DNA of 64,000 bases, from positions 3,038,001 through 3,102,000 of the forward strand of contig CP075497.1 of the NCBI GenBank assembly GCA_021613535.1, in the 5' to 3' direction. The notes under the pieces are model-generated. The model had not been told where the DNA came from, ran no database searches, and worked only from the letters and a program-made list of their open reading frames with translations. This document shows, piece by piece, positions 27,701-44,700 of this stretch (its first letter is position 1; each line of letters begins with the position of its first letter). The position numbers were made by a program, and so were the translations under genes. Origin of the DNA: Adineta vaga. Lineage: Eukaryota; Animalia; Rotifera.

Positions 27701-30700
27701 TGTTCAATATGAAAGAAGAATCAATGAATATTGAGTTTTCTCTCTCCTTTTCTTTGTATTGTTTCCTTTGAGATCGAGAAGATAGAAATGAAAGAAATGA
27801 AGTGTCGATAGTACTCGTTAATTTGAAATTGATCATCGTCATCAAGATGTCTGTCACTCCGTTTTGTCTCTTTTTCCTTGTTTGATTTAGATGCACGTTT
27901 GTACGTTCTCTCTTTTTTTCGCCGCATTATCATTTTTTTGTGAAAAGATGATTGTCTTGTCTGACCGAGATTTACTTGAACGAGTCGTCCGTTTCTAACT
28001 AATATGAATGTAGTAAGAGGAGAAAGAAGAAGAGAAAAAAAAGAAGGAAAGAAAAAATATAAGTAGAAGCAGCCTGTAGACACGAGGCGGCGAGTTCATA
28101 TGATGTGTTAGTTATAAACGACAAGCGCGAGTCAAAGTATTAGAAGTAGCAATTCTAATTCAACGTCGGAAATCATTGTTATTAGTATTTTTCATATGAA
28201 CCAATGATGAAGGTAAAACGAAAGAACGAGAAGTGTTAGCCTCTAGAGAAATCTAAATGAAAATTGTAGTTACAATTGAATACAAATATTATCATTGATA
28301 GATAGTAACTATCTTGTTATGAATACCAATCATGAGAAACAAAGTACCTTTACTTGTTCCACACGATTTGTTGAAGGTTTTATTACTATATTTTATCAGT
28401 GTCAGCCATCCGAATGAAATCATCAGTAATTTTTTTTGCCCAACGGGCAACGACTCTAACAAGAACGGAAGAGAACTTGAACACATTCATACATAGTTAA
28501 AGTAAGGCATACAGAAAAAGAGCGAGAGAGAGAGAGAAGGAGATCTATTAAGGAACCATCCTCATCAAATGATTGATTTGCGTGTGTTTACTACATATAT
28601 CTATTGCATAATATAGTACACATATCCAACTTATAAGATGAGGCTTCAGTGGACATCTGAGTCGAGTGAATAAGTGAGAGAAGATAGACATAGTACTCGA
28701 AAATGCAACTCGAACCTCAGATTGTATGAATGATTGTCTGAAGGCAATGAATATATAGAGGAGGGGAGGTAGATATGAATCTATAAGGATAATAATCATG
28801 TAGCTGTAAAAAGAAATTAATCGGATTGTTTGAGTATGTAAGTAAGTATGAGAAGAGGATTTTCTCTTTTTTGCTCTCTCTCTCTCTCTGCCTCTTCCTT
28901 TTCTCGTTTTCTTTTGGCTAGAGCTTGTTTGATTAGTCTTACTTAGCTATTGGTTACATATCTATCTTTACATATTAATTTACAGAATGGTGATGAACAA
29001 CAACGTATGTTGATCGACATACTCAAACAAAAATATCCACGACAGCATGTTTCATCATCATCCTCATCAGCTGTATCGACACCAATGATGGTAAAAACTA
29101 TCAATTCATTATCAGACTAAAACACTGACATGTTTCGTTTTATAGCCACGTACAAATTCACCTCATCATCGTTCATCATCAACTGATCCAACTGATGAAG
29201 AATTAACAACAAGTATGACAAATGGTTAGATAGACAAGATTTACAATTTCAGATGAAAATTTCAATTAAATCTTAATATACTCTTAGGTTTTATTCGTGG
29301 TCAACGTAATCGTTCAAGTTTGCCCTTTATCATTAAACCTGCATCGAATATTTCGAAATCGAATTCACTTGGTAAAATTTAATGAGATGATTTAATTAAA
29401 AATATATCGAAACGAATCTATTGGCTTCTTTTTAGGTCTCTGCTTTTTAATTTGTGGTGATGAAACAAAAAAAGTTCTTCTCCCATCCTATATTTCGTGC
29501 ATAGATACACTTAAAGCATTATTTGTTCGGTAAGTTTTCTTTCTTTTTTTTTCAACAGTTTCTCATTAACATAGATAAAGCCGATAGGGCTGAGAGAAGG
29601 AAGAAATGAATGATTATAAAGAAAAGGATTGTGTTCATCCGGTTTTAAATCACGAGATTCTCTTTTCTTCTTCTTCTTCTTCTTATTCATTGTCTTTATT
29701 TGAAGAGCATTTCCGCAACATCTAACTATGAAACATATGGACACCGACGATGTACGAATCTATATACGTGAACCGGATAAAGATCTATTTTATCAATTAG
29801 AAGATATGCGGTAAAATGTCATTGAAATGTCAATCATGTCTAAGACAATTTTCTCTATATAGTGATGTCAAAGATCGTTCCGTCCTCAAAGTTGTTCAAC
29901 TGCATAATAATAATAATAATAATTCTAAACCACAAGTTTCCTTTAAAGAACCAGAGTCAGATGAATTATCAATTTATGTACCATTTACATCACGTCCAAC
30001 ATTAGCAAGTGAAATAACTTATCAACGTCTAAGTCGCCTTGGTCGTATGCCATCAACAACATCAGTGTTATCAACATCAAGAAACGGTTCAATTGAAGAT
30101 AAATCGTCATCATCTGTTCTTACTAATTCACAAATATCATCAAACTCAACATCATCACGTTCTCTAAGTGAACCAAGGCGTCGAATCAACAATAATGACA
30201 CTACATCTACTGCTAATAATCAAACACATACAAATTCTAATTCATTAGGTCAGTTGAAAATAGTCTAATATGTCTGTATTATATGCTTTATTGTCTAGCG
30301 CCAAAGGGTATACTCACATCACCCAGAAGTGGTTCAACAACGCCGACAACAGTTCGATTCAATGATGATGATGCTCAGTAATAATGAATATAAATTCATT
30401 TCTTTTTCTTTTATGTTAAATCAAACTAATTATAAATTTTAGAAGTAAAATGATCTGGATGGAAAAACAACTGGACTCGTTGACAGAATTAGTAAAAGAA
30501 TTAACACGTGAACGTACATTAAATGAACAAAAATTGTCAAAAAGAACAGATGTATATAAAGGTATTTAAATGTAAAAATATTCTTTCGTAATCCTTTGCT
30601 GTATTGACTGATTACTAAAAAAAAGAAATCTACGTCGAACAACAATGAGAGTTAGTACCCCTTTGGGTTATCGATTCATTTTTAGTTGATGATGTCATTT

Positions 30701-32748
30701 CCTGCTTCGAGCGGATTCAATCGAGGACAATGACGAGAGAACGTGTCAATTAGAATATATACATATATCTGAACATAGAATAAATTGATTCCTGTACTTT
30801 GTTATTATTTTATTAACTGATCTTCATTTAGACATTAACGGCAAATCATTTCGTCAACAATTATATGAATTAAAAGTCAAAATGCATACATTACGTAATG
30901 ATTTAATATCAATACGACGTATGCAACAATCGTTAACAGATAATTTCAAAACACAATTACACGATGCCAATAAAAAGATCGAAGTAAAATAAGATAATTT
31001 CTATTATCAAGAGATTTTATTTTGATTATTTTTCTTTCTCGCTAGAATCATATTCATCAATTACATCAAACAGACACACGTTCAGCACAATGTCGAAGTG
31101 TAGAAGATGAACTTGATTTATATATGATCAACAGTACAAAAATTGATCGAGATTTAGAGTAAGTTCAAATTGAATATATTGTTGACTGAACGAATATAAC
31201 ACCTGTTTGTGAAATAATAGAGATTTAGAAGCATCAGTAGAAGAATTACAAAATGATGTTAAATCGAAACAATGTTACGTCACAATGAATGATGTTGAAA
31301 GTTTTGCATTAGTTCTCAGTACAATTAGTCGATCATTAGTCGATTTAAAAGGTAAGAAAATTTAATGTTAAATCAATATGATATAGACTGTCTATTGTTT
31401 TCTTTCTCAAACAAATAGCTTCATTTCCTGTATTACGTGAAAAGATTTCTTCACTTGGTCCACAATCAACATTGAATGATGATCAGAAGTAATTAAACGG
31501 CTACCTTTAAATGAAACGAATTCTATGTTACAATTCGTTTGTTTTTAGATTTTTACATGAAGAACCAGAACGATTAGATTATACTATCAAAAAATGTAAA
31601 CGATTAACAACCATGCTCTATCAGTTGAAACGATTGGCTATAACTCAAGAACAAAAATCATTGTCAATTAAGTCATTACAACGTCGATTTTCCTTCGGTA
31701 CAAATGGTAAAGCAGTAGATCGCAAACGTTTATTGGAACAAATCGAATCTATTTCTCAGAATTCTGATGGTCGAGTTAAAGCCATCGAAGTATGTAACTA
31801 TTTTATATAAATATACATATATTCATCTGTTTGTATTTGCAATTTAGAAAGCAGAAAAATTACGAGAATGTCGACTAAATTATGCGAATCAATTGGAAAC
31901 ACTCAAACAAATGAAATATGCATCTGAACAAGTGAGAAACGACTCTGATGACATTGTGAATAGTAGAAGAATATAATCCGTTGTTTTGCTTTTGTAATTT
32001 TTAGATCGATGGACGTGATTCAAGTCAATGTTTTGATACACGAAGTTTAACGAATTCAATTTTACTTTCATCAAGTACACGAACAAGTATATGTTCAATG
32101 CAATCGACAACTGATTCTGTTCCGTTATCAAATAATTGTCCATCACCTTCTCTTTCCTATATTGTTCGTCAAGCTCTTATTTCTCCTACAAATTCAGCAA
32201 TAACATCAACAAATGAATGTAAAATGCGTCCACAATCACTAATCAAACCACCCTCGAAAGTAACCTTTTCTCAACAATTAATAACAAATGGAAAATCATC
32301 AGCAAACTCACGTGATCATTCAACAGATTCATCTTTATCAACCAATGGTATTTGTATCAATAAAAAAAGCAAACCAACACCACCACCACGTACTCAAAGT
32401 ACATCATCATCTGCTGTTTCAAGTGCAGCATCATGTTCATCATCATCCAGTTCATCAACATCATCGAATGGTAGTGCTAATTCACGTTCAATAAATGGTT
32501 ATTGTGGTATAATTCCACTTGTTATTTCACCTGATCGACGTCATAATGGTCGATGTAATTCATTTTCATCCTCGAGTACAGATACTGATTCAGTTATATC
32601 TAATCCTCGTGGTACTATCTCACATAAATCGCCAACAGTACTTAATACAAAACCGATTTTAATATCAAATGGTTTTCATCACAAAACATCATCATCATCA
32701 TCAAATAATTCAACAGCATTGATGCGGGCTTCTGTCACTGATTTATAG
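18704..32748 (+). CDS. Sickle tail (KIAA1217)/SRCIN1-family AIP3-domain coiled-coil adaptor; multi-exon with alternative first exons
   Basis: Exons give LIDILKQKYP, RSSLP, GLCFLICGDETKKVLLPSYISCIDTLKALFVRAFPQHLTMKHM..IYIRE..FYQLEDM.DVKDRSVLKV, matching the conserved SKT/SNIP core. Coiled-coil exons at 30830-31930 (DLEASVEELQNDV, RFLHEEPERLD). The C-terminus is VTDL. The 5' start is uncertain. Confidence 0.8.
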
Positions 32749-33095
32749 TCCTTATTATTCTGTACAGTTCGCTATAGGTGTTTCTTTCTCTTTTTTTCTT
32801 CTGTACGTGTGTTTGTACAGCCTTGTCGTTTTGTTTTGTTTTTTCTTTCTCGTTTTTTTTACTATTATTTTTTTCGCTTTTCTTCTTTTTCTTTTGTTCG
32901 TATCGTTATATTATAGCAAGACAAGAATAAAAGTCAACGATTACTAAATTTTCGTCACTTCGCATAATTAGCAACTTAAATCAATAGAGCGAAACAAAAC
33001 ATAACACGGCATTGATCTAAAGGATAAAATATTTCATATGATGATTGTTTAATTTTCACTGTGAGAATAATAATGCGATAACAGATCAACTATAA

Positions 33096-34431
33096 ATGGG
33101 TGCAACATTGAGGTAAGTCATTCTATTGTTATTACCATACTTTCATATGAAGACCAGAAAGATTAATGAGTCTGTATTTAATGAGCAAGGTGTCACTTTT
33201 TTCTATATTTATATGTATTTAATTAATAGTTCGAGAAAAGATTTCAATCGTGTCCTTGCACAACAACCACGAACATCAATTCACATACCACGCTATGATT
33301 CATTACAGCCCATTCGAAGCGAAAATTCAACCGGCTCACTTCCAGTCAGTATTTCTCTCCTCTTCTTATCGGATAATATGTATATTTATATTCCATAGAT
33401 GCCTTTTCCTGAACTCACGTCGAAACCACAAATTCAACGTGAACATGAAAGTGCGAGTTTTTCAGATGCTATTTCTGTTGTTAGTGATCATACAGCACAA
33501 GTGAGAACTTCGACGTTTTCATTTGTACAAACATTTATTTTCCGACCTTTTTCAGTCAGATTCATCCTATATTATCTTCGATCAGATGCAACAAAAGCAA
33601 GTGAATGAGTTTCAACCTGATGCGCCTATGTATGATAAAATAAGAAGTAATGATACGGTAATTCTTTCTCGTTCGTTGATGCATGAAAAAGATCAACAGC
33701 AAATGAAAAATTATTGTTCTACATCTATTCGACCTGAACATACAATGGTTGAACGAAATGGAAAGAAGTTTATAGTAAAGGTTAAACATCGAACTGAACG
33801 ACGATACGTAGAATATAATGATCCAAATACACATAAGAAACGATTATTTGAAGTTATCGATTGTATACCATATCGAATAATAGAACCATACAATGAGCAT
33901 TCTAAATCAAACAATAGATCTTTACAAAGTACCGTTCGTTCTTCTCATTCACCCATTATTTTGGCACTCGCAGAGAATCGCTCAGAAACATCTTCTCCAT
34001 CCACTTCAGATCACAGTGAATATTCATCTTTTTTTCGAAGGGATACTTGCTTTTAGCATCATTTCTATCACATAGATGTAAATCCTCAAGACTATAACAG
34101 ACTATTTCAATCAGACAGTCATCGAATACAAAAAACAAATAAGACTAACAATAACTATGAACGAACTACGGATATTTCTACTGAAATCATGGGTAAATAC
34201 GAGCTATCGAGATCTTCTCATTCATTTACTGTGTCCAGAGATCCACCCGCCAATCGTCAACCAACAAACACAAATAAGTATGAACGGAAACCCGTAATTA
34301 CCCATACACACCCTACCGAAAACAAAGACTATCTCGACAAACAATTCAACTCGGTTAATTATACATCAATTCCAGTGGTAACTAAACAACAAAGTCAATC
34401 CATGATGAATAAAAGTGTGTCGTATATTTGA
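33096..34431 (+). CDS. Hypothetical protein with N-myristoylation-like start (MGATLS)
   Basis: Micro-exon ATG GGT GCA ACA TTG AG|gtaagt at 33096 splices in frame to 33230 (SRKDFNRVLAQ..), then links the ORFs at 33399, ~33560-34015 and 34057-34431. No family recognised. Confidence 0.65.
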
Positions 34432-34829
34432 AAAACAATTTTAGTTTCTTTTTGAAATTGCAATATGTGTTAGAAAGAATCACTGTTATTTGATTAATGA
34501 ATAAAATGACATTGATTTACTGAATAGTAGTCGATGGTATTTTCATTTTTTATTTTCCTTGTTAAAAATATTTCAAAAGATCAGTACGGAGAAGTAGTAA
34601 TTATTTACTATTGTTACCTATGCTTCATTATCGTGTAACTGCTGACAATATTTGCTTTCTTTTAACTCTTCGATTCCGATTGTTGTTACACAGTGAGAGC
34701 AAAGCATGTGAGAAGAAGAAATCATTTGTTTCTCGATTCTTGAAGAAATTCATTCTTTATTTTTACCTGAGACACTCGAGACACTCGAGACACTCATTTA
34801 GTATATTTTTTCTCTCGTTTCGCGGTAAC

Positions 34830-35324
34830 ATGGCAAGACCAACAAGATTTGCAAATCCTACGTTTACGGATTTTGAAATACTAAAGACAAATGATGACGT
34901 AAAGAAGGCAATAGCAGACACAAAGGATAAACTAGTTGTTATTCTTTTCAATATCCGGTAAGTGAATAAGAATCATTCGCATTGCGTTTTCATTTCTGGA
35001 TGTTTCTCATTTCATAGATATCCTGATCCTAATATGCATACTCTTGAAACAAGAATGAAGAAGTGGCTTCATCAGTACGAAACAAATGTAAAATTCTACA
35101 AATATATTGTTACCGATGAACCGCAAGATGTGAAAGGTATATATGAAATCAAAGAAGTACCAGTAGTATATTTTTTTCGTGATGGTGAAATTTCTGGAAA
35201 AATCGATGATTTCATGGAATCGGATCCTGATGCATCAGATACAACGGCACCAAATGAAAAGAGTCCGGATGAGACAAAACTTAAAAGCAAACTCGATGAA
35301 CTCTGTAAATCTGTGAAATACTGA
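34830..35324 (+). CDS. Thioredoxin-fold protein lacking CXXC
   Basis: Two exons (intron 34958-35018): ..KKAIADTKDKLVVILFNIRYPDPNMHTL..NVKFYK....YEIKEVPVVYFFRDGE. Trx secondary-structure pattern and cis-Pro motif are present; the WCGPC position reads YPDPN. Confidence 0.75.
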
Positions 35325-35578
35325 TTTGGATCGGATTAATTAATAGACTTTTTATGCCTGATAAAATTATTCTCAACTTGTTACGAAATCTCGCTATGAT
35401 TTATGACTTCAAAAACTATTTTGAAAACAGTTTATTTAAATTACATCAGTTATCTATGGTGATTCTCTCTTATTCTTGAACATTTCAATAAGATTTCATT
35501 GAAAAGTATTTTTTTTGTCCTTTTTTCATAAGAAACTTTGAGTGTCGGAAGAAAAAGAAAAGTCTATGAAAAGAACTT

Positions 35579-35644
35579 TCCAGGCAGACAAAATCAATAA
35601 AAAAACATTTTTACGCGTTTTTTTTAGACGCTTGTGTGTCTGGG
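35579..35644. mobile_element. Possible tiny MITE remnant
   Basis: Imperfect inverted termini TCCAGGCAGACAA ... TTGTGTGTCTGGG around an A/T-rich core. Confidence 0.3.
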
Positions 35645-36513
35645 TGTCAGTGGATTAGAGCCCGTGAAGAAAATTGTCAATGATTTCGTGATTTATTAGA
35701 TACTGCTTATTTTTTGTTTAAACATGAACTTCCACATACAATACAGAACTATTACCATCAATTAATGAAGTAATAGGTAAACAAATATTAAGAAAAAGTT
35801 TGTGAATCAAGAGTTATTTCAATCATGACTGACAAAGGCACAGGTATAAATCATCATCAAAATTTATTAATTTATATACATTATTGTAATCAAGATACGG
35901 GTGAATGTATTTTTTCTCTGCATTGACTTGTACACTGAAAAGAAGAAAGATTTTTGACGAAACCATTTGGATTTTGTGTAAAGTTAATGTTTTCCAAGAG
36001 TTATCGTGCAATTGTACGAAATCTATAAAAATTTCAGTACCATGTGAGCTGTTTTATTAAACTCCCATAAGTTCTTTGGAGATCAATAGTATTCTCAACC
36101 GACGCTATATATAGATTAATAGTCGACCGTCGATCAATTGGTTTTCTCCGGATCTTTGCTTCATCACTAAATTCTACCAATTTATTTTAAAATTTTATAG
36201 TTATATGAAATGTTTAGGTTTGTTTGTTACGGTCTTTCTCTCTATTGTAGAATAACTATCTACAATATCATCTTAACCACGCTTTTTTTTATTTGGTTTT
36301 CATCTAAATATGATTCAAGTCATAGTAAATCTATCGTGATAACGATTTTCTTCCATATAATTCTGTTTCAGTGGAAGAAAGGATCATGTTTTTTTTATAT
36401 CTAAATCTATTATGAATCAGTCATTTTTCCATTAATAAAACAAACAATATACATATATAAAATATTTCTGAATCTGACATTTAACATCTTTATACAATAT
36501 TAATTAAAATTCG

Positions 36514-37667
36514 TTAGGTTCGACATTTTTTGGCATTAAAAGATTGATCAAAATTTGAGTCGACTAGAGGTCGTTTTTTTCCAACTTTTACTTCACTACA
36601 TCGTAGGTGTTGTTGTTGACTACTAGTACCATGTTCATCTTCATCGATCATTTTCTGGCGTTCAGCTTGCATTGCATCATCGAGCCATTCGACACGCATC
36701 GATGGTTCGACATCTGTATTATTATGACTATTGTTCATGTTACTGATGGATCGAATGATTGAAAGTGATTTCTTATTTTGTTCATCATCAATTATTGATG
36801 AACGTGATATAGATGTATTACCGTTGTTATTATTGATGTTGTTATTGAGGAATTGTGCTAAAGAAGATTCAAGATCATTGAGCATTGTTTCTGCTTCATT
36901 AGAAATTTGTGATGATAATGGTTGTATCAAAGATGGTATGACTTTTGGCGATAAGACTTCTGATACAGGAATAGATGTGACAATCTGAGTTTTTTGCTTT
37001 TTATTGATAGGTTTTAGTGTAGTGCGAAAAGTTTGAGCAGGTTTCAAAGGTATAGTTGGTTTTATTGTTGTTATTGTTGTTAACGAAGGTACATGATTCT
37101 CTTCGTCTTCGTCATCTTCATCATTATCATCACCTGCTGAAACAAAATTCTAAAAAAAAGAATGAAATAAGATCAAAATGAATTCATTCTATTTTAACAA
37201 ACCAATGATCGATTTGGATTATAAGTACTAGCATATAATTTCTCAGCTACACGTTGTCCAAATTTTTGGCAAGCTTTGAGCCATGCAGGATGTACACATG
37301 TTGCTTGATATTCTTCAACTTTTTTATATTCTTTTCCTCGTTTACTCAATTTTCCCTAAATAAGAAAATGACAATTATTAATATATTCTCTTTGATTGAA
37401 CTATGTAATCTAGAGAAAAAAACAAACTTACCTGACAAATATAATGAGTAAAAGGTACATCGAATACCCAAACAAATTTTCCACCAAGTGCTGTACATTG
37501 TTGATGTAATACCATTCTATTTGTGGCTAGTTGTTGAGACACAAAAATAACAACACCTTGTAATGGAAGTTTACTCTGCATTGACTAAATAAAAAAACAA
37601 ATCAAATTTTGTTATTAAATGAAATATAATTTATTACTGATGAGAATGCCTGAATTTCTTCGGACAT
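36514..37667 (-). CDS. Mini-TopBP1-like protein: single BRCT (BRCT6-like) plus ATR-activation-domain motif, 323 aa
   Basis: Exons 37667-37638, 37584-37432, 37355-37203 and 37149-36514, all phase 0. BRCT: PLQGVVIFVSQQL..LGGKFVWVFDVPFTHYICQG..EYKKV..VHPAWLKAC..EKLYASTYNPNRSL. AAD-like motif EPSMRVEWLDDAMQAERQKM. Basic C-terminal NLS. Confidence 0.82.
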
Positions 37668-37938
37668 AGTCGACTCTTATTCGTTTACATATAGAAGACA
37701 ACGAAGAAATACATATACAACAACAACTGTGTGACTAGCCGTTTTTTCTTTTACCAATCATAATTGTAAATTGATAAACGACATCTATAGGTTATTGTTT
37801 AAATAAACCAATCATTTGTTAAAATACGTTTTTCATAGGTTAAAAACGGAGTTTGTTTTGTTTTAATTTCGCTACTTTCTATTTAGTTCATTGTTATATG
37901 TGATTATTTCAAAACACTCCAATGTCTTTAGTCAGGCA
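37668..37938. promoter_or_regulatory. Probable bidirectional promoter region
   Basis: About 270 bp between the divergent start codons of the BRCT gene (37667, -) and C6orf120 (37939, +). Contains CCAAT boxes (ACCAATCA twice). Confidence 0.5.
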
Positions 37939-38667
37939 ATGATCGCCTGTTGTTATAATTCATTCATTCTTCTTCTATTCTTTTCGTTTCTATCATCATC
38001 ATCATCATCTTCTGGATATGTACAATCATCCATTTATTCTTCTTTATTTAATGATGGTGGTGATGATACTAGTACTGAAACGAAAAATAACGAAGGATGG
38101 CAATCAATTGATGATGAATATATTGATGAATTAAAATATCATCGAACTTCATATCAACACGAACAAGACTTATTAGCAAGTATTTATGCACCCAATCGAA
38201 CTTATATTTCGATGCATGATGATCGAATTCAACCATCAAATTTTACATATTTTACATTTAAAAATCGTGGAACTTACAGATTTATTCTTATATCATTGCA
38301 CGGCGATGCCGATCTGTATATTTCAACACGTGATAAACATGTAACATATGATAACTATGAAATAAGTTCATGTACATGTGGTATTGATGAAATACTGATT
38401 GATCCCTATGTAAAACGACCTGTTTACATTGGGATCTATGGTTATTCACAATATCAAATAAGTCATTATCGTTTACTTGTTGAATTAGTGGATGCAACAA
38501 TTCCAGTTGATGCTGTGTACGATGACCAATCAACAAAGGAACAAGATACTTCACGAATAAATCAAAAAACTCCACGAGTTACTAGTGAAAATAAAGATGA
38601 TCAACAACACTTACTATGGAATATTCTTTTATGGCTACTGAATGTTCTGGTCGAAGCGTTAACTTGA
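37939..38667 (+). CDS. C6orf120: UPF0669/C6orf120-like protein (intronless)
   Basis: Signal peptide, then NFTYF..LISLHGDADLYIS..YDNYEISSCTCGIDEI....RPVYIGIYG and a C-terminal hydrophobic LLWNILLWLLNVLVE. Confidence 0.88.
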   Translation: MIACCYNSFILLLFFSFLSSSSSSSGYVQSSIYSSLFNDGGDDTSTETKNNEGWQSIDDEYIDELKYHRTSYQHEQDLLASIYAPNRTYISMHDDRIQPSNFTYFTFKNRGTYRFILISLHGDADLYISTRDKHVTYDNYEISSCTCGIDEILIDPYVKRPVYIGIYGYSQYQISHYRLLVELVDATIPVDAVYDDQSTKEQDTSRINQKTPRVTSENKDDQQHLLWNILLWLLNVLVEALT

Positions 38668-38904
38668 TCTATTTTTCTTTTCCAGTCTTTCATCTCGTTT
38701 TTCTTCTTCTTCTTTACGTCTATACGTATATATATATATATACATATACTTGTTTATTTGCCGGTGTTTTATTTGCTTTTTCTGATTTATTTATTTATTT
38801 TCCTCTCCGATCCTATACTTAATTCATGTCATATAACTAAACACTTTCTTTTTCTCTGTTCTTTTTTTTTCTAGATTATATTTCAATAAGAAAAACTCAA
38901 AACA

Positions 38905-40027
38905 ATGATGAGTACATTCAATCCAATGGGCGCACATTATGATACAATTAATGATAAAGATGATTTCAATATTGGAAATTCAAATAGAAATTATACCATT
39001 GATCCTTTAGAAACCGAAGCTGAACGAAATATTCGTACACGAACTGTGTAAGTAGAAATCAAACTTTTATATCTGATTTTTATTATTTGATATTCTTTAG
39101 TACACCTATTGTAACTGGTTCATCTATTGCTGCCTTCGTTTTCAATGGCGGTGTTATTTTAGCTGCTGATGTTCTTGGTTCATATGGTTCTTTAGCTAAA
39201 TATCGTAATTTACCACGTATTCATCAAGTTAATGACAAGACAGTTTTAGCACTTGGTGGCGATTTATCGGATGCTGATTATATTAAAGAAGCCATTGATT
39301 CTAAAGTGTAGGTGACCCATTTGAAAGGAACATTTTGATGATCTTTGCTTTTTTTTTATATAGTGAAGAAGATATTGTTCAAGAAGATGGTGGTGAAATG
39401 ACACCATTGGCTCTCTATTCTTGGTGCACTCGATTGATGTATCATCGACGAACAAAATTCAATCCATTGTTGACAAGTGTTGTAGTAGCTGGTTTAGAAG
39501 ATAATGAACCGTAAAGATAATTTATCAAATGAAAAAGTGAATTAATATTTATTATTCTATAGATTTCTTGGACGTGTCAATGATAAAGGCTCGGCTTATA
39601 AAGAATTTTTAATTATGACTGGTATTGCCAATCATTTAGCTCAAGTAAACTTATCGATTGTAGAAAATCATGTTGTTGAATAGTTGTTTATTTAGGGTTG
39701 GATTCGTACGATCTTAGAAAATTCCACTCAATTAAATAAAGATCAAGCTGAACAATTGATGGATCGTATTATTAAACAACTTTACTATCGTGATTGTCGT
39801 GCATTTGCTCGCGTAAAAAAAATGAATCTTTTGTTTTTGCAAATTAATTTTCTTTTTCTTTTCTAGTATCGTGTTTGTATTGTAACAAAAGATGGTGTTG
39901 AATTTAAAGCCAAAGAAGTCCAACCAGATTGGAGTTTAGCACCAAAATTGTATGTTTTAATCGATGTCTATTATTGTTCATATTTATTAAATATTTTTTT
40001 CTTTTTTCTAGACGTAATACAGAATAA
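38905..40027 (+). CDS. PSMB4: Proteasome subunit beta type-4 (beta7)
   Basis: Spliced exons give TPIVTGSS..FNGGVILAADVLGSYGSLAKYRN, MYHRRTKFNPL and QLYYRDCRA. Stop at 40025-40027. Confidence 0.95.
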
Positions 40028-41722
40028 ATGATTACATTCAAAATGATGAAAAAACAACAACAACAGAACAATATAGCCGAGAGTTTCATTCTTGTGTTGT
40101 TACTTAGTTCTTTTCTTTTTCTTTTATTATCATTCTAAATACAGACAAAGTCTTATTTCATGTTTTATATCTGTATCTATTGATATAGTATTGGCCATTT
40201 CGCTCCGAGCAGATAGATAGATATTCTGAAGGTCGCGTAAAACATCAATCGAGAAATCGATTCATTACTCTTACGATGTCAAAGTTGCCGTCATAAAATA
40301 CAATCAAGTGTGATAGAATATTTTCATTTTCTTCAAAGTATATTCAACAATCTCTTGAAATTGTGATTATTAACTTTGAACAAGTTTCTATTCTTGTAAT
40401 ACGAACAAAGGATGTAATTATACGTTGCGTACATTCATATTTCTCAGTTGATTGTTAACCATTTGAGAAGAAAAAAAAACAGAACTTCTTTTCGAAATCA
40501 TTGAGACTTCCATAGACATCTGTAGAAATTTAAAAGAACAAACACAATGATAAATAAAATTGATTAACATCTGTTTTAATCTGTCTGTCTCATCATTAAA
40601 CTGTTGCGAGAAGTGAATATGCCATGTATCATATTTCACATTTTTCATTCTTCTTCATATTTTAATTTGTCTATCGCTCGTGTTTCCATTGGCAATCCCT
40701 ATCCTATCCGAGATTAGAAGACAATGTTGTGCTCTTTCAACATATCAAACATTCAGTCTAATCAGAATGTTTGCTTTTATACTATGTCTATATTCTCTTT
40801 ATCGATTATTAAGATACATCTTCTTTGTTTTCCATTAACGTCTATTGATAGTTTGATCGGATAAGATATATGTTACTAGTCTGTCTGTAACAGATATCTC
40901 ATTCTCATAACAATAAATGAATGTATGCATCACGTCTTCAAAACAAAAAGAACTAATCATTTCTTTTTTCAAAGACTTCTTATTAGTCATTATACACATT
41001 CACACTTTTATTCAACTGTGATTAGTCAGGTAAGATGATGATGACACATCCTATTCTTCTTCTCTCTTCATACTTAATGGTACATGGCACGCGTCAATTT
41101 CTTTTTCTCTCTCTCTCTATCCCTTTCTCTTTCTTTATTTTTCTCCATTTCACTCGATTCAACTCGACATTCTTAACGCTTCTCTATCGTTCGAATAGTT
41201 CATCGAGAGGGAGAGAGAGAGAGAGCGCGACAGAGAGGAAGAGGAAGAAGGAGAGAAAGAGGGAAAGAGAGAATGACCGTTTGACCGGTTCAATGTTGCT
41301 CGCCGTATATTCATGTCATGGCTATTGGTCGATGAGGGATAGATGGAACAACGTACATGTAAAAAGTCTGTTCGTTTTCTCGTCATTGCCGTCAGTCTTT
41401 TTGCCAATGACATTAATTGAAGTGACGACTGCTATTATTGCTGTCCTACTTTCGTGATGTATGTCCCATTATGAATAACGATGCCACCACCTTTTTTTTC
41501 TATTACATTCATTAAATCGATTAGCTCCACATCTGTTCAATTCACATCGTCTATAGGACCAAGTTAACTTCGATGATCGACCTTAGTCATATTTCATTTC
41601 CAATAGAAACACGAGAAAAAGAATGCAAATGAACGAATGTTTTGTTTTTGTTGTAATATGAGTCATATATTGTAGATATTTACAATTCGATTGTCCTAAA
41701 CGTACGTTTTAAACAAAATATA

Positions 41723-44700
41723 ATGTTCAAATTTAAACTCGGACGTAAACAACCCGAGGAAAACGAAGCTCGTCGACGTCTTCAAAAAGAACTATTTGGA
41801 TTAAATAAAGTAAGATTTGAAATCTATTTTCTTTATGATTCATCTTAAATTTCTTCTAGATTTGTGATCGAGGATTTCCCTCGCGTCCATCAGCACTTGC
41901 TTACGATTCTCAATTAAAAATAATCGCCATTGGAACACATTCGGGAGAAATTCGAATGTAAGATGAAGTTTTTTTTTATGAGAGAAAAGTCTTTCTATTC
42001 TTATCCTTCTTATTTTCTAGTTATGGCCAACCAGGATTTCAATTATCCTACAGTCTCGAACTTTCACCATCATCATCAATTCGTAAATTAATTTTTCTCG
42101 ATGGTGTAGCCCGACTACTTGTTTTAACTATTGATGGTTATTTACATTTACTTGAAATTAATAATTATACTCCAACACAAAATGATTCATCATCAAATAG
42201 TACTGTACGTATTGATCGTATTTGTACATCAAATGATGATGATGCAGTTATATTGAAAAATACACAAACAATCTGTTTATTAAGAAATCATTTAAATCTC
42301 TTGATTGGTCTGAATGATGGAAATATTTACTTATTTAATATTGAAAATTTCTCATTAAATGTTAATCCAATTATTCCAACTGATGTTATTGAAAAAACGT
42401 AAGTGACCAAATGGAATAGATTCCCTTATGATTTAGTCTCATGAGAATCAGTTTTCATTTGATTTCAATAAGCAAATAAAAAATTGAGAATGATCAAAGC
42501 ATTTAGTTTTTTCTTTGAATAATTTATTAATTTTTCTGTAGAATTGTTGAATATTGCAGTGGTCGGATTGTTCATCCGGGACCTGTACAATCCATTGTTC
42601 AACATCCAATAAATGAAGATAAAATATTGATTGGATATAAGAATACTCTTATTGTACATTGGGATCTACCATCAAATAGTCATGATCGAACCTATATTTA
42701 TAAACAAGTTCGTTTTCATATTTAAAAATAGGATAATCGAATATTTTCGTGTTGTTCTTAAGGAAGTTGAATCGGTTTGTTGGTATAATAAAGGAATGAA
42801 CTTTGCTACATGTCACAATAATGGAAGCTATGCATTATGGGATGCTAAACAACAATTAAATATTGTTGAAACAGAAAAAACACCATATGGACCTTATCCG
42901 TGTACACCAATGACAAAAATTTGTGTTAAAATCATGAGAAAGTAAGTTAAATAAACGTAAAGGAATAGCATTTGCTTGTTTAATACAATTGACTAATTAT
43001 ACAAACTGTTAGAGATAATTGTAAAGCTTTAATTCAACATACATAATACAAATCTTTCCGGTGCAGTTTTCCTCTAAATAAATTTATCTCTTTTTTTTTA
43101 TTCATTTGAAGTGGTGATCCTTTAATAATATTTGCCGGTGGCTTACCTCGTTCAAGTTATTCAAATAAACATAGTGTTAGTTGTCTATCGGAAAATGAAC
43201 ATGATCATAATAATGATCGAACACGACATGTTACATTTGATTTTACAACAACAGTAATCGATTTTTTTACTATTGATAAAATATCAAACGATGGAAGTAT
43301 GTTCATTTTCTATCGGAAACTTTTCAATCGATTCATAATTTCATCTTTTAGCTCGTGATGATCCTCAATCAGTGGTCATTTTATTAAATGAAGAAATTGT
43401 AGTTATCGATCTTGTTACTGATAGTTGGCCATCATATCATTTACCATATTTAAATAGTATTCATGCATCTCCTGTCATTTGTACAACATTAACATGTAAT
43501 ATTAATCCACAATTTTATAAAAAACTTGTTAATTATGCTGCAATACAATTTGATGATTATTCTGATCGAGTTTGTTGAAAATTATTTTCGTATTTGAATG
43601 AATTCTTCTATGTTTTTGTTTAGAAATGGCCAATAACAGGAGGAGAAATAAAGCATAATACAAACAATTCAAATGATGATACAGAACAACGACATTTATT
43701 ATTAACTGGGTAAGAAATTTTCGTGAATAAGAACTTTTAAATTTCATTTCCTCTTTTTTTCCTTATAGACATGAGGATGGTTCCGTACAATTCTGGGATA
43801 TCACAAATATTTCAATGCCATTGATCTATAAATTAAAAACAAGTGATTATTTTCAAATTGAACAAGCACCTATCGATGAAACAGATGAAGAAACATGGCC
43901 ACCATTTCGAAAGGTTCATTGTTCAACTATCTATTTCAAGATTTTCATTGTCATATTTTCTATTTAGACGGGTTTATATGATCCTTATTGTGATGATCCA
44001 CGTTTAGCTATACAAAAATTATCATTATGTACAAATACAGATACATTGATTGTTGCTGGCACAGCTGGTCAAGTTCTTACTTTTGAATTTTCGACGGAAT
44101 CTACCGATGTAAACATCACTGTAAGTGATTTAATTTAAAATTATTCAAAGATTTCATCTATTTTTCTTCTTCTTCTGATAGACAACAACAGTCAATTTAC
44201 TTGATGGCTGTGAAAGTTTTGTTTGGAAAGGTCATGAAGAAATGAAAACGAAAGCAACATTTATTCCATCTGGTCTTGTTCTAACATCATTAGTTCAACT
44301 TTATCCACCAGCAGCAATATCAGCGTTAGCCATATGTTCTGATATTCAAACGTAATTTTTTTCATAGCATATTTGTTATCTCTTATAAAAAATCAATCTT
44401 TGGATATTTTAGTTATGCTGTGGGTACTGCACATGGTTTTGCAATATTTAATTATAAACAAAACCGAATTCTTACTGCTAAATGTACACTTGATCCAAAT
44501 GCATTAGGAAATACTCCACCTGTTCCATCATCTACTGGTGAATCGACATTAATTCGTGGACGTTCATTGAAAAAATCTCTTCGAGAATCATTTCGACGTT
44601 TGCGTAAAGGTCGTACCATTCGAAAAGCGACAATGTTACCAACAACAAAACGAACAGATGAAAATAATCCATTATCACAAACCAATATGCATTTAGAAGA

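Follow-up and report, generated by a model that had tools for sequence, protein, structure and literature searches.

A stand-alone Adineta vaga gene with TopBP1 BRCT6 and a probable ATR-activation domain is a 5'-truncated TopBP1 ortholog

The bdelloid rotifer Adineta vaga has a short gene encoding one BRCT domain and a long tail, which we analysed in relation to TopBP1. TopBP1 is essential in animals, where one polypeptide links damage sensing (9-1-1, MDC1/53BP1) to activation of the kinase ATR. The window under study is the 64,000-nucleotide stretch C6:3038001-3102000 of a chromosome-scale contig, in an assembly of 100.8 Mb and 6 contigs. The short gene lies on the minus strand at positions 36514-37667 of the window, is single-copy in the assembly, and is composed of four exons that encode 323 amino acids (10+51+51+211). 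The coding part of exon 1 (MSEEIQAFSS; 37638..37667) is followed by exons 2 (37432..37584) and 3 (37203..37355), which encode the two halves of the BRCT domain, and by exon 4 (36514..37149), which encodes the 211-residue tail and the stop codon; exons 2 to 4 are placed by translation and RNA contigs. The three introns are 53, 76 and 53 nucleotides (nt) long, all with GT..AG ends, and intron 1 lies at 37585..37637. This four-exon reading frame had been proposed in an original prediction made from the letters of the window alone, and its product is identical to P0001 ('hypothetical protein I4U23_028224 [Adineta vaga]'), a database entry that exon 4 retrieved in a word search.

To check the splicing, 5,001 letters of the window (34500-39500) were compared with the contigs of four runs. 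All three joints (37149/37203, 37354/37431 and 37584/37638) occur in RNA-type contigs from three different studies (X1, X16 and X17), which cover exons only; the joints read CT..AC on the plus strand. A DNA run (X14) covers every bin and has none of the three. The X16 contig continues 84 nt past the intron-1 joint, to about 37721, with no further joint, and in none of these RNA-type contigs did we find a joint to upstream exons. The X1 and X17 contigs start at 36398, which places the 3' end about 116 nt beyond the stop codon. The approximate extent of the mRNA is 36398..37721; contigs cannot fix its exact ends. In the 5' untranslated region (UTR) an in-frame TAA (37677..37679) stands four codons 5' of the ATG, where the upstream frame reads ...VNE*EST before the methionine, and a divergent open reading frame (ORF) of the UPF0669 family starts at 37939, about 270 bp away. 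Both the stop and the nearby divergent gene had been recognized in the original prediction. An environmental complementary DNA (cDNA) contig from the Joint Genome Institute (L031, 1111 nt) contains an uninterrupted 310-residue ortholog ORF, again with an in-frame stop in its own 5' UTR. Because of the RNA contigs, the stops in the 5' UTRs, the close divergent neighbour and the independent cDNA, we conclude that the short, stand-alone mRNA is real. Two further joints, 37123/37991 and 37131/37992, were rejected as assembly artefacts, as they are also present in the DNA run and fall in GAT-rich low-complexity sequence. Such GAT/ATC-rich coding stretches occur at 37100-37131 in the short gene and at 37991-38013 in the UPF0669 gene, and give rise to false joints of about 860 nt.

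The gene is also conserved at the protein level. Compared with the cDNA ortholog L031, and summed over separately aligned exons, the synonymous divergence (dS) is 0.44 and the ratio of nonsynonymous to synonymous divergence (dN/dS) is 0.28. By part, dN/dS is 0.17 and 0.14 in the BRCT exons and 0.33 in the tail exon, and the start M-S-x-E-I is kept in Adineta and Rotaria orthologs. The short gene is under purifying selection and is not drifting. The earlier view of a stand-alone gene is thereby upheld on three counts, namely the lack of joints to upstream exons in RNA contigs, expression and constraint.

BRCT6 is the least understood domain of TopBP1, and it is the one that the short gene has kept. 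The domain spans intron 2 and covers residues 16-108 (37215..37569, minus strand). Pfam BRCT (PF00533) matches residues 16-90 (E 1.2e-7; 32.3 bits, with a curated cut-off of 21.3), its halves lying in order in exons 2 and 3. Among all chains in the PDB the only significant matches are to human TopBP1 BRCT6, in entries 3JVE (E 4.8e-14) and 3PD7 (E 2.4e-11), and both alignments cover residues 7-108 without a gap, reaching the TYNP end. The BRCTs of REV1 and XRCC1 come next, at E>1, and the solved TopBP1 BRCT0-2, 4/5 and 7/8 were not among the PDB matches even at E 10. We searched 1.84 billion representatives with a profile built from nine bdelloid orthologs (A2). At E<1e-10 this yielded 118 proteins, and the long ones were matched about 900-1100 residues in. 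Among those with names are TopBP1s from a nemertean, from a bird and from a chytrid, together with a fungal Dpb11. A profile restricted to the BRCT6 columns matches every one of the 82 fetched hits of at least 800 residues, and in the named TopBP1s it does so at the position of BRCT6. The PDB matches and these profile comparisons agree with the original assignment to BRCT6 in particular, and on their strength we classify the single BRCT of the short gene as the TopBP1 BRCT6 subtype. A Pfam scan found only this one BRCT in the 323 residues, with both the N-terminal BRCT0-1-2 module and the C-terminal BRCT7/8 pair missing, and the 5' side of the gene leaves no space for further domains.

The origin of the gene can be read from Didymodactylos carnosus, the outgroup to Adineta and Rotaria (PMC7943196). 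This species has P0051 (1113 residues, partial), its assembly twin P0193, and a second copy, the ohnolog P0195 (1145 residues, 70% identical). Each is one gene that encodes TopBP1_BRCT0 and several further BRCTs (BRCT0-5), BRCT6, a helix LLNDLQSSVAKLM and a Trp motif IEWLDETARAERKK, and each protein ends about 50 residues past the Trp motif, without BRCT7/8. Their BRCT6 is about 55-63% identical to that of the A. vaga short gene. The fusion of BRCT0-5 with BRCT6 was checked for artefact: the models from two loci are in agreement, and introns of about 60 nt separate the exons surrounding BRCT6. In the NCBI model of P0193 (L028 10001-18911) Snf7 is fused to the TopBP1 N-terminus, and this part is probably an annotation merge of two adjacent genes on the same strand.

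Gene order at the D. carnosus locus is LLGL - ELMO - Snf7 - TopBP1 - X - AIP3, and in A. vaga it is AIP3 - X - short gene - UPF0669 - proteasome subunit - LLGL. The downstream anchors in the window, AIP3 (29960-32760) and the unnamed gene X (33234-33840), were found by tblastx against D. carnosus L026 and L028, and the upstream anchor LLGL (41708..42942) by tblastx against L028 and from gene tables (L032, L033). The head-to-head neighbour UPF0669 (C6orf120-like; 37939..38667, plus strand; Pfam PF17065 E 2.8e-25) and the proteasome subunit gene stand in Adineta and Rotaria at the place that ELMO, Snf7 and the BRCT0-5 exons take in D. carnosus. In Adineta steineri and Rotaria sordida the arrangement is exactly that of A. 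vaga, with the same UPF0669 neighbour, and all of the Adineta and Rotaria species have the short form. The three introns of the A. vaga gene are at D. carnosus intron positions, intron 1 being at that of the intron directly 5' of the BRCT6 exon, and the first exon is new, having no equivalent in the TopBP1 of D. carnosus. Synteny, intron positions and the full-length gene of the outgroup together lead us to conclude that the short gene is an in-place, 5'-truncated TopBP1 ortholog. The break fell within the intron 5' of BRCT6 and is older than the split of Adineta and Rotaria. In A. vaga the Snf7 ortholog is now at a distance of 76 kb (C6:3151203-3151669), the lost BRCT0-5 exons were not found beside it at C6:3.151 Mb, and the best A. 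vaga ELMO match is on C3. Within 37939-39500 the UPF0669 gene is followed by the proteasome subunit gene, which has two introns of 53-56 nt.

The tail consists of variable linkers and, across Adineta and Rotaria, four invariant or near-invariant blocks, among them residues 262-284 (SMRVEWLDDAMQAERKKMIDEDE) and a basic C-terminus. Tail block 1, EAETMLNDLESSLAQFL, comprises residues 197-213 (36847..36897, minus strand, as are all tail features), and is all but invariant in nine bdelloids, residue E206 being the sole variable one. Block 2, DDEQNKKSLxIIRSISN, comprises residues 233-249 (36739..36789), and block 3, SMRVEWLDDAMQAERQKMIDEDE, residues 262-284 (36634..36702), with the codon for W267 at 36685-36687. 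AlphaFold2, run on a shallow alignment, predicts helices at 193-217, 236-245 and 266-284, with a predicted local distance difference test (pLDDT) score below 50 outside them. The C-terminal motif (KKRP...x12...KKCRT; 36517..36579) has invariant K304, R305, K319, K320 and R322, a pattern that resembles a bipartite nuclear import-type signal. Further toward the N-terminus, a short way past BRCT6, alignment A1 has an acidic run followed by a near-invariant EENHxPSL (residues 118-136; 37078..37134); both are found in all bdelloid orthologs, with no obvious counterpart in other TopBP1s.

The human ATR-activation domain (AAD) of TopBP1 contacts ATR-ATRIP through three segments: t-alpha1 (F1071), t-alpha2 (L1123, R1127), and a strand with I1143 and W1145 that leads into helix t-alpha3 (PMC13468113). 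We read the human letters from PDB 9ZD1 and 23FD, which hold ATR-ATRIP with the human AAD, and the human motif given in the original prediction proved correct. The three bdelloid blocks follow in the same order as the three human segments and with similar spacing. Block 1, a predicted helix, would stand at the place of t-alpha1, and block 2, with its predicted helix 236-245, would take that of t-alpha2; in block 3, V265 and W267 are at the place of I1143 and W1145, with predicted helix 266-284 at t-alpha3. The conserved KKSLxIIRSIS stretch lies 23 residues N-terminal of W267 (22 in human), and its likeness to t-alpha2 is one of position and pattern only. V265-E-W267 corresponds to I1143-x-W1145, and both the human and the bdelloid motifs have E-R at +8/+9 from the Trp. 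Among 34 TopBP1s the canonical motif has the consensus E-x-S-Q-x-x-Q-V/I-T-W-D-D-P-T-x-R-x-E-R-E-K-L, and the Trp follows the end of BRCT6 at a median distance of 156 residues (range 103-253), compared with 159 in the short gene. Several TopBP1s are covered by single HMMER envelopes from BRCT6 to the Trp block, such as the nemertean P0067 (907-1198) and the bird P0130 (891-1172). In one such envelope the near-invariant predicted helix 193-217 was aligned to the human LEMRENFQKQLQEIM region, with an uncertain register and no Phe at a fixed matching position. The change of the SQ site (S1138 in human) to SM, which had been noted before, is real; mutation of S1138 to Ala had no effect on activation in vitro (PMC13468113).

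The tail was also compared with other TopBP1s after removal of BRCT6. When the bdelloid tails (A4) were aligned by hhalign with 30 canonical TopBP1 tails (A3), the Trp block was the only hit, with W on W, at E 0.027. With seven divergent TopBP1 tails added (A6), the Trp block was again the sole hit, W on W, at E 6e-4, a figure that is flattered, as the added tails were picked partly for having a Trp motif. Statistically, the match of the Trp block is moderately supported. Other observations weaken the case, and taken alone the Trp motif is only weakly similar. An HMM (hidden Markov model) of the canonical Trp motif does not single out the motif in P0001, and the bdelloid Trp-motif HMM matches only D. 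carnosus and, marginally, Tubulanus. The residues after the Trp are L-D-D, not D-D-P, the alignment of block 1 drifts by a few residues so that the match to F1071 cannot be fixed, and the AlphaFold2 model is poor overall (pLDDT 41). The whole-tail comparison was used because HMMs of the motif alone are too insensitive to settle AAD homology. On balance the tail is likely homologous to the TopBP1 AAD, with the essential Trp kept, as originally proposed, and it would still act on ATR.

A genome search with D. carnosus and nemertean TopBP1 found, besides the short gene, only a locus at C6:9.357 Mb, 6.3 Mb from it. Read exon by exon, this second TopBP1-like gene (C6:9355473-9358132, minus strand; L024 3973-6632) encodes BRCT0-1-2-3 and a Trp motif of its own. 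BRCT0, BRCT1 and BRCT2 reach a summed E as low as 1e-36 to TopBP1s, and the exons of the fourth BRCT match the BRCT3 region, not BRCT6. In its tail, a helix that ends in FLN is accompanied by the motif VKVSWVDDSTEAERLRQ, and this motif can be aligned with both the bdelloid (E 0.0037) and the canonical (E 0.017) Trp blocks; the spacing W-x-D-D...A-E-R is identical to that in the short gene. The locus has no neighbours in common with the D. carnosus TopBP1 loci, and in its N-terminus it resembles D. carnosus TopBP1 no more closely than it does the TopBP1 of other animals. A word search with a mixed alignment (A5) did not retrieve an annotated protein of this gene, returning only D. carnosus TopBP1, a spider protein and PTIP-like proteins. 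A weak BRCT locus at C3:9.594 Mb was considered and does not clearly qualify as an ohnolog of that gene.

Apart from those of the second gene, the genome search found no further BRCT0-5 exons matching the D. carnosus TopBP1 type, at the short-gene locus or elsewhere. TopBP1-type BRCT4/5 and BRCT7/8 were not detected in the A. vaga genome by six-frame searches, which can miss short diverged exons; for BRCT7/8, PF23294 had no genome match and TopBP1 residues 1277-1361 matched only PTIP-like loci. The original prediction had called for a search for separate genes with BRCT0-5 and BRCT7/8 and for AADs in them, and the outcome is divided: a BRCT0-3 gene with its own Trp motif is present, and BRCT4/5 and BRCT7/8 were not detected. 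Of its two explanations, the one in which TopBP1 had been divided between a scaffold gene and an activator gene does not hold in the form proposed. The short gene is a 5'-truncated remnant at the ancestral locus, as shown by synteny with D. carnosus, and the scaffold gene did not give up its activator, because the second gene, at an unrelated locus, has its own Trp motif. The other explanation, an extra activator uncoupled from 9-1-1 docking, fits the anatomy better than a split.

Two loci at C5:14.56 Mb and C2:2.767 Mb were rejected as TopBP1, since they have RTT107_BRCT_5 and BRCT_2 pairs beside an Mlf1IP gene and are PTIP-like. They form an ohnolog pair (C5:14561419-14563779 and C2:2766150-2768259) with six BRCTs, each beside Mlf1IP (CENP-U-like), and are easily confused with TopBP1. 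As for the kinases, the ATR kinase exon is at C1:8980890-8981516 (E 7e-59 to human ATR) and that of ATM at C2:14305181-14305858 (E 3e-56), with seven FATC loci in the genome in all. ATR was identified by its kinase exon, a six-frame Pfam search for UME being blank and uninformative, and a six-frame Pfam search for ETAA1, likewise of an uninformative kind, gave no match.

We propose that in the ancestor of Adineta and Rotaria the TopBP1 locus lost everything 5' of the intron preceding the BRCT6 exon, and that the truncated locus gained a short first exon and a promoter region that it shares, head-to-head, with the UPF0669 gene. Its product would be a nuclear protein of 323 residues: BRCT6 and an acidic linker come first, followed by a tail that is mostly disordered and bears three conserved blocks, and by a basic import-type signal. 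The tail would bind and stimulate ATR-ATRIP in the way that the isolated TopBP1 AAD does in vitro, where the human domain activates ATR-ATRIP about 100-fold (PMC13468113). Lacking BRCT0-2, the protein could stimulate ATR without docking on phosphorylated RAD9. Lacking BRCT1/2, 4/5 and 7/8, it would have none of the known dimerisation surfaces, and its activity would probably be weaker, or reliant on targeting through BRCT6. The second gene, with BRCT0-3 and its own Trp motif, would work alongside and keep the replication and 9-1-1 roles. A 5'-truncated TopBP1 ortholog that acts as an independent ATR activator is our best explanation, and one to which we give moderate credence.

Some evidence counts against such activity. 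To be fully active AADs have to dimerise (PMC7994790), and no dimerisation surface is evident in the short protein. In human work the isolated AAD is monomeric, its half-maximal effective concentration (EC50) is about 5-fold weaker than that of full-length TopBP1 (PMC13468113), and it gains from dimerisation (PMC13468113, PMC7994790). Activation of ATR by this protein is something that we infer from sequence. Expression data also bear on the question. A supplementary table of PMC10809525 labels two A. vaga genes 'TOPBP1' by KEGG orthology, of which FUN_027899, with a single BRCT and no BLAST hits, is probably the short gene, a mapping that we infer. FUN_027899 has a mean count of about 200; in the series of desiccated animals it is unchanged at 0 h and 2.5 h after X-rays and slightly lower at 8 h and 24 h, and it is also unchanged in the listed comparison of hydrated animals (PMC10809525). 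If the mapping is right, the short gene is not induced by desiccation or X-rays, and its expression looks constitutive, not damage-induced.

The same features could also describe a protein that dampens the checkpoint. It would bind ATR-ATRIP through the blocks resembling t-alpha1 and t-alpha2, activate it poorly, being a monomer with an altered Trp segment, and compete with the BRCT0-3 TopBP1, lowering checkpoint output. There is a precedent in the unphosphorylated AAD of ETAA1, which binds ATR well, activates it weakly and inhibits activation driven by TopBP1 (PMC13468113). The need of AADs for dimerisation (PMC7994790), with the known dimerising BRCTs missing here, and the departure of the Trp segment from the consensus would suit such a role, as would the proposal that A. 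vaga carries broken chromosomes through divisions and needs an attenuated checkpoint (PMC13564844). However, bdelloids show no variation at the Trp, at the hydrophobic residue at -2 or at the E-R at +8/+9, an invariance that mere binding would not call for, since the human W1145R mutation hardly affects binding (PMC13468113). We rank an independent activator first because the isolated AAD activates ATR, and a competitive damper second, as a weakly activating AAD can compete with TopBP1; we consider the damper unlikely.

Still less probable, in our judgement, is that the tail is no longer directed at ATR and that the protein has another nuclear role, exerted through BRCT6, the acidic run, EENHxPSL and the basic C-terminus, with the Trp block serving a different partner or self-assembly. 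The motif-only searches were not significant, several conserved motifs lack a TopBP1 counterpart, and W1145 also governs TopBP1 condensation, a BRCT6-AAD-BRCT7/8 fragment being able to phase-separate (bioRxiv 10.1101/2020.10.05.326181). Against such a role, three colinear blocks are spaced like the three ATR-contacting segments, the same blocks occur in full-length D. carnosus TopBP1, and A. vaga has ATR. Finally, the short gene could be a wrongly annotated part of some longer TopBP1 transcript, or a remnant in decay, but this is largely refuted and very improbable. Contigs cannot prove transcript ends, and eukaryotic fragments are common in databases. On the other side, exon 1 is contiguous in RNA contigs with the 5'-UTR stop, all three species examined have the head-to-head neighbour at 270 bp, D. 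carnosus-type BRCT0-5 exons were not found elsewhere in the genome, L031 has a 5'-UTR stop of its own, orthologs keep the start codon, and the gene evolves with a dN/dS of 0.28.

The favoured reading, a truncated ortholog that activates ATR, can be compared with known systems. Relative to animal TopBP1 (1522 residues in human; bird P0130, nemertean P0067), BRCT6 of the short gene is 35-40% identical without gaps, and at the same distance beyond it comes a disordered tail, the probable AAD, in which two helices are predicted ahead of the hydrophobic-x-Trp strand and its helix. It differs in having SM for SQ before the Trp and L-D-D for D-D-P after it, and in lacking BRCT0-5 and BRCT7/8, and with them docking to RAD9, Treslin, 53BP1/MDC1/BLM and FANCJ and the known oligomerisation surfaces. 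The D. carnosus genes share the helix and the Trp motif and, like the short gene, end soon after the AAD without BRCT7/8, but they encode 1113-1145 residues with BRCT0-5 in front, where A. vaga has the new 10-residue exon directly 5' of BRCT6. The second A. vaga gene has the same kind of tail, but with BRCT0-1-2-3, no BRCT6 and a non-syntenic locus. In composition the short gene is nearly the same as laboratory fragments of TopBP1, namely the isolated AAD and BRCT6-AAD-BRCT7/8 ('b6-8'), although it is a natural and conserved gene. In vitro, or once they are driven into the nucleus, such fragments suffice for ATR-ATRIP activation (PMC13468113; bioRxiv 10.1101/2020.10.05.326181). ETAA1 offers a parallel as a second ATR activator, with an AAD on a different targeting device and in a branch independent of 9-1-1. 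Unlike the short gene, however, ETAA1 lacks a BRCT and relies on RPA-binding motifs for its recruitment, and the AADs are not homologous in sequence.

We found no description of a stand-alone BRCT6 and AAD architecture in the searchable literature. Here the presumed activating portion is produced on its own, separated from the modules through which TopBP1 is normally docked at damaged DNA, and the whole Adineta-Rotaria radiation has kept this gene, which comes close to the minimal 'BRCT6 + AAD' construct of the laboratory. It offers a natural test of an untethered AAD in an animal, and of what BRCT6 contributes. The A. vaga lineage lacks H2AX (PMC10809525), and unrepaired chromosome fragments are reported to be carried through divisions (PMC13564844). 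Because this lineage is without H2AX, has apparently lost BRCT4/5 and BRCT7/8, and is reported to pass on unrepaired fragments, a remodelled set of ATR activators is a candidate for an adjustment of the checkpoint. We tentatively hypothesize that the ATR checkpoint of Adineta and Rotaria might have been rebuilt on two TopBP1-derived genes, each with its own AAD: a BRCT0-3 scaffold for replication and 9-1-1, and an unattached BRCT6-AAD protein by which ATR is activated or tuned without reliance on 9-1-1. BRCT4/5 and BRCT7/8 would have been lost altogether. This rewiring could be part of tolerating and transmitting shattered chromosomes.

Other short BRCT6 forms were encountered in the profile search (P0177 at 322 residues, P0107, P0191 and others); these are metagenome or transcriptome ORFs, probably exon-level or partial, and were not counted as stand-alone genes. 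Two environmental TopBP1-like proteins, P0068 (1033 residues) and P0077 (1142 residues), come from an AT-rich, Asn-rich organism. Their BRCT6 is the most bdelloid-like among the scored non-bdelloid hits of at least 800 residues, and both stop right after the Trp motif (LWKDE and LWNEE, respectively), without BRCT7/8. Possibly they are from other rotifers.

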